A stretch of 63,645 bases of DNA, the filler included, from Octopus bimaculoides (lineage: Eukaryota), in assembly GCF_001194135.2 (NCBI RefSeq). It is 5 parts of 4 records of this genome, joined end to end, with 100 filler letters (N's around TTAATTAATTAA, not from the genome) between each part and the next. Parts side by side here need not be neighbours in the genome. Positions count along the whole stretch, not along the records: positions 51,092 to 63,645 come from NC_068996.1; 4 more parts are not named here. The stretch is one strand, 5' to 3'. Under the pieces are notes generated by a model that saw only the letters and a list, made by a program, of their open reading frames with translations, ran no database searches and was not told the origin of the DNA. Below are positions 58,746 through 60,300 of this stretch, piece by piece (the stretch's first letter is position 1; every line of letters starts with the position of its first letter). A program made the position numbers and the translations under genes.

Positions 58746-59331
58746 AAACCTTGGCTAACCTCCAGTACGATTTCTTAAGTCTCTGCCTGAAGCAGAGACT
58801 ACCTTATAGAAAAAGTTAGTGTTCACAAACAAATGAATGAAACAAACAAACAAACAAACCTTACGGCTGTAGCAGCCGCGTATTCGGTTGTTGTGAATGT
58901 GTGTGTAAATCCTCTGGTAATCTCCAATACGCGCTTTCAAAAACAGGGGTAACCTTCTTTTAATTTTCTTGACTGTATATGTAAGGTCCACAGATAGTTT
59001 TGGTAATGGTGCTTAACATTAATTGCAGCAATAAAATAGAAAAAAATATTGAAGGAAAAAAAAATAAACAAGAATAAAAACACAACACTTTCCGGCCGTG
59101 GTGGTAGCGTGTCGTGTTTGGTAGGTAATGGTACAGAAACTGCACGGCGTACTTGTCAACAGCTGGCAAGGTGGGTAACCCCACTTTTTCAGTTCTGTTT
59201 ACTGTAGTTGGGTCCACAAATGGCTGACACACAGAGAGACGGAGAGAGAATGAGATTAAGTGAGAGACGACCCGTTTCTGTGTGGTTTTTACAAACAACA
59301 AAAGGGAAGTAGAAATTATAACAACAACAAC

Positions 59332-59366
<35 letters not shown>

Positions 59367-59547
59367 TAACAAAAAAAATAAACGAAAAATCTTACGGCTG
59401 CAATGGAAGCAGCAAGTTCGATCCGTGATAGCAGTTGTGACAATTGTTATTTTTGTAATTGTTGTTGTTGTTATCGTTGTTATGGTTGTTGTTTTTGTTG
59501 TTGATAATGTAGATATGACTGTCTATTTGTTAATGTTGGCGTGGTGG

Positions 59548-59579
<32 letters not shown>

Positions 59580-60300
59580 GTGATTGAAGGTGGATAATGA
59601 CCGTAATAGTAGTAGCAGTAGAGATAGTTTGTAAAATCCTCAGGTAGGTTGCTTGTTATACGCTCTCACTGGTTGGCTAGGGCAACCCCCTTTTTTTTCC
59701 CCAGCTCTGTATGCTTTTAGATCCACAAATAAACAATCCTACGTCCGCAGTGGCAGTGTGTTTGTTCACTTGACGGTAGTGGTGGTGTGGTGGAGGTGAC
59801 AGTAGTGGTAGTAGTAGTAGTAGTAGATGGTGGTGGTTGTGGTGTTGAATGGTGGAGGTAGTAACAGCATTAGCAGCAGGAGCGGCAGTAGCAGTAGTAG
59901 TAGTAGTAGTTGTAGTAGTAGTAGTAGTAGTAGTTGTAATAGTGGTGGTGGTGGTGGTAGTAGTAGTATCAGCAACAGCGGTGTAGTTGTGGCGGTGATG
60001 GTGGCGGCAGTGTTGTTGACTGTCGTTTGTGGAGGCGTTGTTGGAGATGGAGGTGGTAATGGTGGTAATTGTAGTAGTAGTAGTAATATTAGTAGTAGGT
60101 GTGAAGTAGTAGTAATCCTCGGGTAGCCTCCAGTACGAACTCTCGGTAGCTGGCAGGGGTAACCCCCTTTTTTTTTTTTTTGATTCTGTATATTCTGTGG
60201 GTCCACAAACAAACAAACAAAAGCTTACGGCCGCGACGGCAACATATAAACCACTCTGCCGAGCGCGGCGGTTGTGAATATCACCATCAGGGTCGACCCT
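58746..60300 (-). promoter_or_regulatory. Five diverged tandem modules directly upstream of the FoxA ATG (putative proximal regulatory or 5' leader array)
   Basis: Motifs recur in fixed order. On the + strand: CTTACGGC at 58860, 59391, 60224 (variants 59088, 59738); GGTCCACA at 58985, 59211, 60200 (variants 59720, ~58820); hairpins at 58778, 58945, 59171, 59679, 60155; CCTCCAGTACG at 58759, 60127 (variant 58921). Function is inferred. Confidence 0.7.

Follow-up and report, generated by a model that had tools for sequence, protein, structure and literature searches.

Conserved tandem modules between an ancient promoter element and the FoxA start codon in Octopus: a candidate expanded 5' leader

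FoxA is a pioneer factor at the top of the gut and endoderm gene networks. Why should five diverged copies of one sequence module stand directly before its start codon in an octopus, and at which level, DNA or RNA, might they act? We have analyzed 63,645 nucleotides (nt) of Octopus bimaculoides DNA (the window), of which the piece 51092-63645 is the FoxA locus. An open reading frame (ORF) on the minus strand, beginning MLSAKTPYD at 58726, has 100% identity to XP_014788201.2. A preliminary description of this DNA had noted five repeated units upstream of the FoxA ATG, and suggested that they are a multimerized enhancer or promoter, serial 5' leader cassettes, or repeated RNA elements. The orthologous locus of O. 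vulgaris (L001, 21 kb) was used for comparison; it can be aligned to the window from 61381 to 57818 with 93% identity, indels counted. Our literature search found no paper on the octopus FoxA upstream region. Feature coordinates are summarized in Table 1.

The FoxA upstream array is a tandem repeat, with copies arranged head-to-tail in one orientation and significantly similar to each other. Five copies of the module, named D, C, B, A and E in the direction of the gene, lie on the minus strand between 58727 and 60245, close to where they had been placed by eye. Microsatellites lie between them, and repeat analysis of the spacers bears out the earlier statement that these have filled with such sequence. 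D, C and A are full copies, and B and E are partial mosaics. The shared segment of about 110-135 nt comprises a short head (GCNGCCGTAAG), a T/G-rich tract, TGTGGAC..ACAG, an A-run and then tail blocks in the order GGGGTTACCCC, GCCAGCT..GAGAG, and CGTACTGGAGG-CTACC-GAGGATTAC.

Several analyses support the kinship of the copies. Self-comparison by blastn linked D-C, D-A, D-B, D-E and B-A, together with the heads, and MAFFT alignments revealed a motif order common to the units. Using nhmmer with profiles from which the tested unit had been left out, D was recovered with E=2.6e-14, A with 7.9e-9 and C with 1.6e-4. Units B and E were not recovered as wholes in this way. A profile of D, C and A did find the front half of B (59221-59154, E=4.9e-7) and, marginally, the tail of E (58771-58744, E=0.035-0.24), and head profiles recovered every left-out head with E about 1e-3. 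Thus B has kept its head and the front half of its body while its tail has diverged, and E has kept its head and marginally its tail, the middle having been replaced by sequence with a different hairpin. The sequence GCCGTAAG occurs three times against 0.12 expected, and 0/100 shuffles contained three or more. Identity between paralogous units is just 34-69%, so the duplications are old. The preliminary description had proposed a count of units in the orthologous region; a five-unit profile identified all five orthologous units in O. vulgaris. No further copy was found in 33 kb of octopus sequence (the 12.5 kb piece plus the 21 kb of L001). The translation of unit D had no real relative among 1.84 billion protein representatives, giving one chance match to an unrelated GC-rich repeat ORF.

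Some further candidates were rejected. Extra units seen by eye at 60345-60246 and near 60500, 60900 and 61080 were at chance level in shuffle tests and nhmmer. A derivation of the units from the ancestral molluscan leader was not supported either, nhmmer giving no match in five leaders. The tail CGTACTGGAGG..GAGGATTAC, which in unit C reads YNKQPT in translation, was considered as a relic of the bivalve N-terminal sequence MYEKQ..GDYLT; tblastn gave E about 0.7-1 and a profile gave 0.1 bits.

Are the modules maintained by selection? Between the two Octopus species the unit cores differ by 15/712 substitutions (2.1%), the spacers by 45/761 (5.9%), the distal flanks that we take as background by 411/5511 (7.5%), and the coding sequence (CDS) by 11/909 (1.2%). 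The rate in the cores is lower than that of the spacers (p=2e-4) and of the background (p=3e-9), and is not significantly different from that of the CDS; spacers and background do not differ. Since the cores are as conserved as coding sequence while the spacers change at about the background rate, selection on the motifs is supported. This comparison indicates that the unit cores are under purifying selection, in keeping with the earlier suggestion drawn from the persistence of the motifs.

The position of the array was examined by comparison with the FoxA genes of Mytilus, Argopecten, a mollusc contig (L005), Haliotis, Patella, the chiton Liolophura, the brachiopod Lingula and the two Octopus species. 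A TATA-type element GGTATATTTRCC is found upstream of the FoxA ATG in six molluscs and one brachiopod at a distance of 70-270 nt, and the pattern GTATATTT.CC is invariant in 9/9 sequences aligned. The element lies 70 nt from the ATG in Mytilus, 103 in L005, 111 in Argopecten, 130 in the chiton, 156 in Patella, 181 in Haliotis and 269 in Lingula; in O. bimaculoides the distance is 1587 nt and in O. vulgaris 1574 nt. The octopus block GGTATATTTACCAAAGGGTCGACC is oriented as in the chiton, whose version GGTATATTTGCCAAAGGTCGCCC is extended in almost the same way. In all molluscs examined GGTATATTTRCC is followed by GGGTC-like and then GATAT/CTATAT blocks. The block AGGTATATTTRCC(C/A)(A/G)GGGTC is conserved in brachiopod, bivalves, gastropods, chiton and octopus, with the GATAT/CTATAT block about 25 nt downstream. 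A further block, RAGTGNYTK, is located about +41 to +56 from the start of the TATA element in Mytilus, Patella and Octopus, and several of the compared loci have a GC box a few tens of nt upstream of GGTATATTTRCC. The alignments indicate that this core promoter is conserved across Lophotrochozoa, and it would have stayed the same since the common ancestor of molluscs and brachiopods. Because it contains TATTTAC, the element could double as a TATA box and a Fox autoregulatory site.

Each of the compared loci has a single GGTATATTTRCC match upstream of FoxA. There is exactly one match in the window, at 60314-60303, just upstream of the head of unit D. Consequently the array and its microsatellites would occupy the leader, and they fill nearly all of the 1.56 kb between the element and the ATG at 58726. 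Transcription would be expected to start near 60285-60275, about 30 nt downstream of the TATA sequence.

If the array were in a leader scanned by ribosomes, this might be apparent in its content of ATG. The 1559 nt from about 60285 to the start codon contain 3 sense-strand ATG, compared with 17.1 +/- 3.3 in dinucleotide shuffles, and 31 on the antisense strand. The unit cores contain 1 sense ATG against 7.6 +/- 2.1, a value as low being reached in 0/500 shuffles, and each of the five remaining arrangements of A, T and G is present 4-12 times. By contrast there is no depletion in the 1.1 kb upstream of the promoter (9 ATG against 6.1 expected). The O. vulgaris leader of 1544 nt has 2 ATG, compared with 18 in an equal length upstream, and the leaders of the other species compared have 0-1. 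Those upstream ATGs (uATGs) that remain are in weak contexts, with a pyrimidine at -3, and open short upstream ORFs (uORFs), and the main ATG has A at -3. Depletion of upstream AUG (uAUG) is a recognized property of 5' untranslated regions (5'UTRs) (PMC7889888). Given that the depletion is strand-specific and that the control sequences are undepleted, we infer that the array is probably a scanned leader, rather than an intron or an upstream enhancer. The six-codon uORF MLPSRP directly follows the conserved leader blocks, and its stop codon (60227-60225) overlaps the GTAAG of the unit D head.

The explanation we favor, with a probability of roughly 55%, is that the array is an expansion of the FoxA 5' leader in the octopus lineage by tandem duplication, carrying constrained modules. 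On this explanation transcription would start about 30 nt downstream of the conserved TATA element, and the mature messenger RNA (mRNA) would retain at least most of the array, as a 5'UTR that is long and poor in uAUG. Its five constrained modules would be repeated binding platforms that tune FoxA output, bound by RNA-binding or translation factors on the leader, by transcription factors (possibly FoxA) on the DNA downstream of the start, or by both. Unequal crossing-over between the heads probably enlarged the array, and microsatellite slippage would later have lengthened the spacers.

A number of points weigh against this. Both the position of the start and the presence of the array in mature mRNA are predictions from sequence. 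The deficit of ATG in the spacers is accounted for by their G-poverty alone. The five cores share one ancestor so that their ATG counts are not fully independent, although a divergence of 31-66% between copies mitigates this. B and E are partial copies. The substitution rates come from a single, closely related orthologue, and the divergence of the spacers is in part microsatellite misalignment. Lastly, the heads carry GTAAG and unit E has a well-formed 78-nt GT-AG interval, which would allow splicing to remove the array in part or completely.

The last point leads to the alternative that the array is mostly intron 1, in which the conserved cores are intronic DNA enhancers. A short exon 1 would then run from a start near 60280 to 60229, with the donor GT at 60228-60227 in unit D, and with the acceptor CAG at 58789-58787 in unit E or one just before the ATG; the other heads would be duplicated exon 1/intron 1 junctions. 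The threefold recurrence of GCCGTAAG noted above fits such junctions, and a duplicated segment that included an exon/intron boundary would be expected to yield a whole number of copies, as in the five heads and five bodies here. The acceptor in unit E has a branch-point-like CACTAAC about 30 nt upstream and a pyrimidine tract. The interval 58864-58787 pointed out in the preliminary description is indeed present, and it combines a GT donor-like start, a candidate branch point, a pyrimidine tract and a terminal AG with a length that could be spliced. Yet an intron has no need to be depleted in ATG, and the cores are depleted in a strand-specific manner. Moreover, the exon side of all the heads (GCC/GT) is a poor fit to a donor, none reaching 7/9 against MAG/GTRAGT, and the scallop (Argopecten) FoxA CDS is a single exon directly downstream of the promoter element with a contiguous leader. 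We therefore regard an intronic array as possible, if rather unlikely. As for a series of leader cassettes with their own introns, the position of the array in a sense-ATG-depleted 5' leader below a conserved promoter agrees with that proposal, but the equivalent intervals in D and C are about 33-36 nt, which is implausibly short for introns.

Could the units function as DNA instead, as a multimerized promoter-proximal enhancer or tandem alternative promoters? They would then offer Fox-type autoregulatory sites (TRTTKRY), with the palindrome GGGGTnACCCC for a dimeric factor. FoxA genes of other animals are known to be autoregulated. In each unit the head is followed directly by one or more TRTTKRY matches, and 19 matches in the 1.57 kb array correspond to about twice the density in the rest of the piece. 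The TGTTTAC reported at 59195 was found at 59196-59202 on the plus strand, within unit B. In addition the conserved core promoter includes TATTTAC, four other molluscs have a GTGTTTW block in their leaders, and the unit cores are conserved. However, the Fox matches are mostly by-products of (TTTG)n microsatellites. The Rel-like site of the earlier proposal departs from the kappaB consensus GGGRNWYYCC, for which there is no exact match anywhere in the piece, GGGGTTACCC having one mismatch. An RFX-like X-box is present in unit C alone, at chance level. No relationship to the units could be detected in the sequence surrounding the genuine promoter, so the units are not promoter copies; the conserved promoter is located upstream of the array and not within it. 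Finally, a function as DNA does not by itself predict sense-specific loss of ATG. A role purely as DNA is thus a tentative alternative, and we think it unlikely.

The repeats might also go back to a mobile element, such as a retroposon, that inserted close to the gene start between duplicated target sequences (the heads); local amplification would have followed, leaving copies that are largely neutral relics. With the CDS start counted as a head, the five bodies would be matched by six head-like sequences, and the heads do resemble the region -14..+30 around the ATG, with a summed score of 70 compared with 58.6 +/- 5.3. That score was reached by 62/2000 shuffles and exceeds those of all 18 control CDS segments. 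The bodies also end in simple-repeat tails. However, the likeness to the CDS start is weak (p about 0.03), and we retain it as a lead for this alternative. The units contain no tRNA-like head (ARAGORN found no tRNA in them) and no known RNA family in Rfam, no other copy exists in the 33 kb from a genome rich in short interspersed elements, and there are no relatives in protein space. The conservation of the cores, like that of coding sequence, speaks against neutrality. We consider a mobile origin very unlikely.

Least probable of all, to the point of being nearly negligible, is that each unit is a discrete structured RNA element or small RNA gene, as had also been suggested. There are potential hairpins GGGG-GUUA-CCCC in D and of 10 bp in E, and B can form GUGGG-GUUA-CCCAC with two compensatory outer pairs. 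But the units have no Rfam match even at E<=1, the matches that were obtained being low-complexity microRNA noise outside the units. Folding energies are like those of shuffled sequences (z from -0.86 to +1.34), and the hairpin is lost in the minimum-energy folds of C and A. Thus neither Rfam nor folding lends that suggestion any support.

A more specific form of the leader expansion is that the five AUG-free modules constitute a modular translational-control leader of octopod FoxA mRNA, built by tandem duplication. The (CAA)n-, (ACT)n- and (CAT)n-type spacers between them would be G-poor and unstructured, and the whole might serve as a multivalent RNA platform, possibly for regulated or cap-independent translation. 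We view this particular function as distinctly unlikely.

In being built of repeats, the array belongs to a known kind of promoter-proximal or 5'UTR region. Tandem-repeat arrays that modulate expression in promoters and 5'UTRs include the INS variable number tandem repeat (VNTR), the MAOA uVNTR and yeast promoter repeats. Like these, the FoxA copies are local, head-to-tail and immediately upstream of the coding sequence, slippage alters their spacing, and module number could have a dosage-like effect. Classical VNTRs are homogeneous and polymorphic, whereas the FoxA copies are old and strongly diverged, yet each conserved between species, and the unit is long and multi-motif with separate microsatellite spacers. 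Long uAUG-poor leaders with translational control or IRES (internal ribosome entry site)-like activity occur in Drosophila Antp and Ubx and in vertebrate Hoxa genes. The proposed FoxA leader is similar in exceeding 1.5 kb in a master developmental regulator, in its strong depletion of upstream AUG, and in having conserved blocks with less conserved sequence between. It differs in that it consists of tandem duplicates, which to our knowledge have not been described for the Antp, Ubx or Hoxa leaders, and has no stable RNA structure predicted.

There is also some resemblance to the alternative first-exon arrays of the clustered protocadherins and UGT1A, in that cassettes ending in a donor-like GTAAG precede a common coding exon. 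Unlike those, the FoxA units have no detectable copy of a core promoter, and are cassettes of about 150 nt rather than full exons, with a poor exon-side fit to a donor. FoxA autoregulatory sites in the gene's own regulatory DNA are found in HNF-3beta/Foxa2, sea urchin foxa and pha-4. The octopus gene similarly has Fox-type heptamers in and beside its own promoter, including the TATTTAC of the conserved element. Here these are sequence matches, mostly microsatellite-derived within the array and modestly enriched.

If the leader expansion is correct, an ancient core promoter has been kept while 1.5 kb of duplicated, selectively maintained modules were inserted between it and the coding sequence. 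This would be a concrete example of regulatory innovation in coleoid cephalopods. With GGTATATTTRCC as an anchor, leader length can be determined for any genome of the Lophotrochozoa, and the expansion can be dated across cephalopods.

Table 1. Features of the FoxA locus in window coordinates, with promoter block sites of the compared loci
Feature	Position	Strand	Description
Core promoter element GGTATATTTACC	60303..60314	-	TATA-type; contains Fox-type heptamer TATTTAC; single match in window
Extended promoter block GGTATATTTACCAAAGGGTCGACC	to 60291	-	Conserved in molluscs and brachiopod
Promoter block sites	60291-60314	-	Compared loci: L001 8194; L002 3889; L004 3818; L005 319; L006 2929; L007 2843; L008 2870; L009 2731
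Leader start	60246..60302	-	Aligns as orthologous to leaders of other molluscs; 1.9% substitutions vs O. vulgaris
GATATT block	60282-60277	-	Within leader start
GAGTGGTTT	60256-60248	-	Within leader start
uORF MLPSRP, 6 codons	60225-60245	-	ATG TTG CCG TCG CGG CCG TAA; identical in O. vulgaris
Unit D head ATGTTGCCGTCGCGGCCGTAAG	60224..60245	-	Identical in O. vulgaris; GTAAG donor-like site, GT at 60228-60227
Unit D body	60112..60223	-	(TTTG)n, TGTGGAC, CACAG, A14, GGGGGTTACCCC, GCCAGCTACCGAGAG, CGTACTGGAGGCTACCCGAGGATTAC
Spacer D-C	59761..60111	-	G-poor trinucleotide microsatellites, (ACT)n, (ACC)n, others; 7.5% substitutions vs O. vulgaris
uATG in spacer D-C	59870	-	34-codon uORF
Unit C	59631..59760	-	Head with GTAGG, plus body; 0.8% substitutions vs O. 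vulgaris
Spacer C-B	59416..59630	-	(CAT)n, (CAA)n-type microsatellites
Unit B	59105..59415	-	Head 59415-59391 GCAGCCGTAAG, recovered with E=8e-4
Unit B middle	59390-59227	-	T-rich tract, (ATT)n/(GTT)n microsatellites
Unit B body	59226-59105	-	Tail diverged
Unit A	58903..59113	-	Head 59113-59075 GGCCGGAAAG, without GTAAG; head E about 1e-3
Unit A tract and body	59074-58999; 58998-58903	-	T-rich tract; body
Unit E	58727..58886	-	Head 58886-58860 ACAGCCGTAAG, E=1.5e-3; 0.6% substitutions vs O. vulgaris
Unit E inner order		-	Head, (TTTG)n, TGTGAAC, replaced middle with predicted hairpin GTCTCTGC/GCAGAGAC, tail
Unit E tail CGTACTGGAGGTTAGCCAAGGTTTAC		-	E=0.035; 17 nt then ATG
Candidate intron in unit E, 78 nt	58787..58864	-	GTAAGG, CACTAAC, pyrimidine tract, CAG; read from sequence
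FoxA CDS	57818..58726	-	Starts MLSAKTPYD at 58726; interrupted by assembly gap 56993-57817; protein XP_014788201.2

The C-terminal third of FoxA is lost to the assembly gap. XP_014788201.2 (310 amino acids) ends in ...KILLKRVQDSR, which is unlike O. vulgaris (…KSEISPAAAV…) and seems to be a product of the gap. The O. vulgaris FoxA model (356 amino acids) begins at an internal methionine, 231 nt downstream of the conserved ATG. Other molluscan FoxA proteins open with MYEKQ..GDYLT-MLSTKSPYD. The octopus protein begins at MLSAK, lacking the N-terminal extension MYEKQ..GDYLT of bivalves, as does that of Patella; Haliotis has a short N-terminus MDSYSPG, and MVLGLQEGMT is found in the chiton. In O. 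vulgaris the 9.7 kb upstream contain no intact copy of the extension. Protein searches for cephalopod FoxA returned matches from O. bimaculoides and O. vulgaris alone, and a query with the N-terminus only gave zero matches, for which we suspect low complexity. Matches in Logan were nearest to bivalves or chitons, not octopus.

In Haliotis rufescens the annotated isoform X1 (L004, 4001-53786) spans 50 kb and is not colinear in translation. Nevertheless the sequence at its start, MDSYSPGMLSAKSPYD, is uninterrupted in the DNA and lies 181 nt downstream of the promoter element, which occurs again in this locus at 23927-23938 on the opposite strand.

Upstream of the octopus promoter there are two plus-strand matches to the CTCF core CCASYAGRKGGCRSY, at 60473-60487 and 60875-60889 with 1 and 2 mismatches respectively; 0.24 were expected, and 2 were reached in 3/100 shuffles. 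A third, weaker copy lies at 61048-61080, and all three have the same orientation. They belong to D20, a family of 33-nt repeats situated 160-770 nt upstream of the promoter, and the first adjoins a GC box GGGGCGG.

The region from about 58900 to 61600 has a strong strand asymmetry. The sense strand of the leader is 14.6% G, and on that strand its trinucleotide microsatellites are, with one exception, of types without G. The GC skew of the plus strand is +0.35 to +0.59, and extends past the presumed start into CT-/CA-rich upstream DNA. A 65-nt direct repeat (61933-61997 and 62070-62134, 95% identity) adjoins a gap starting at 62135 and may be an assembly artefact. Within the CDS a 48-nt tandem repeat at 58393-58496 (2.2 copies, 82% matches) encodes a repeated VNGVGVGSM motif.

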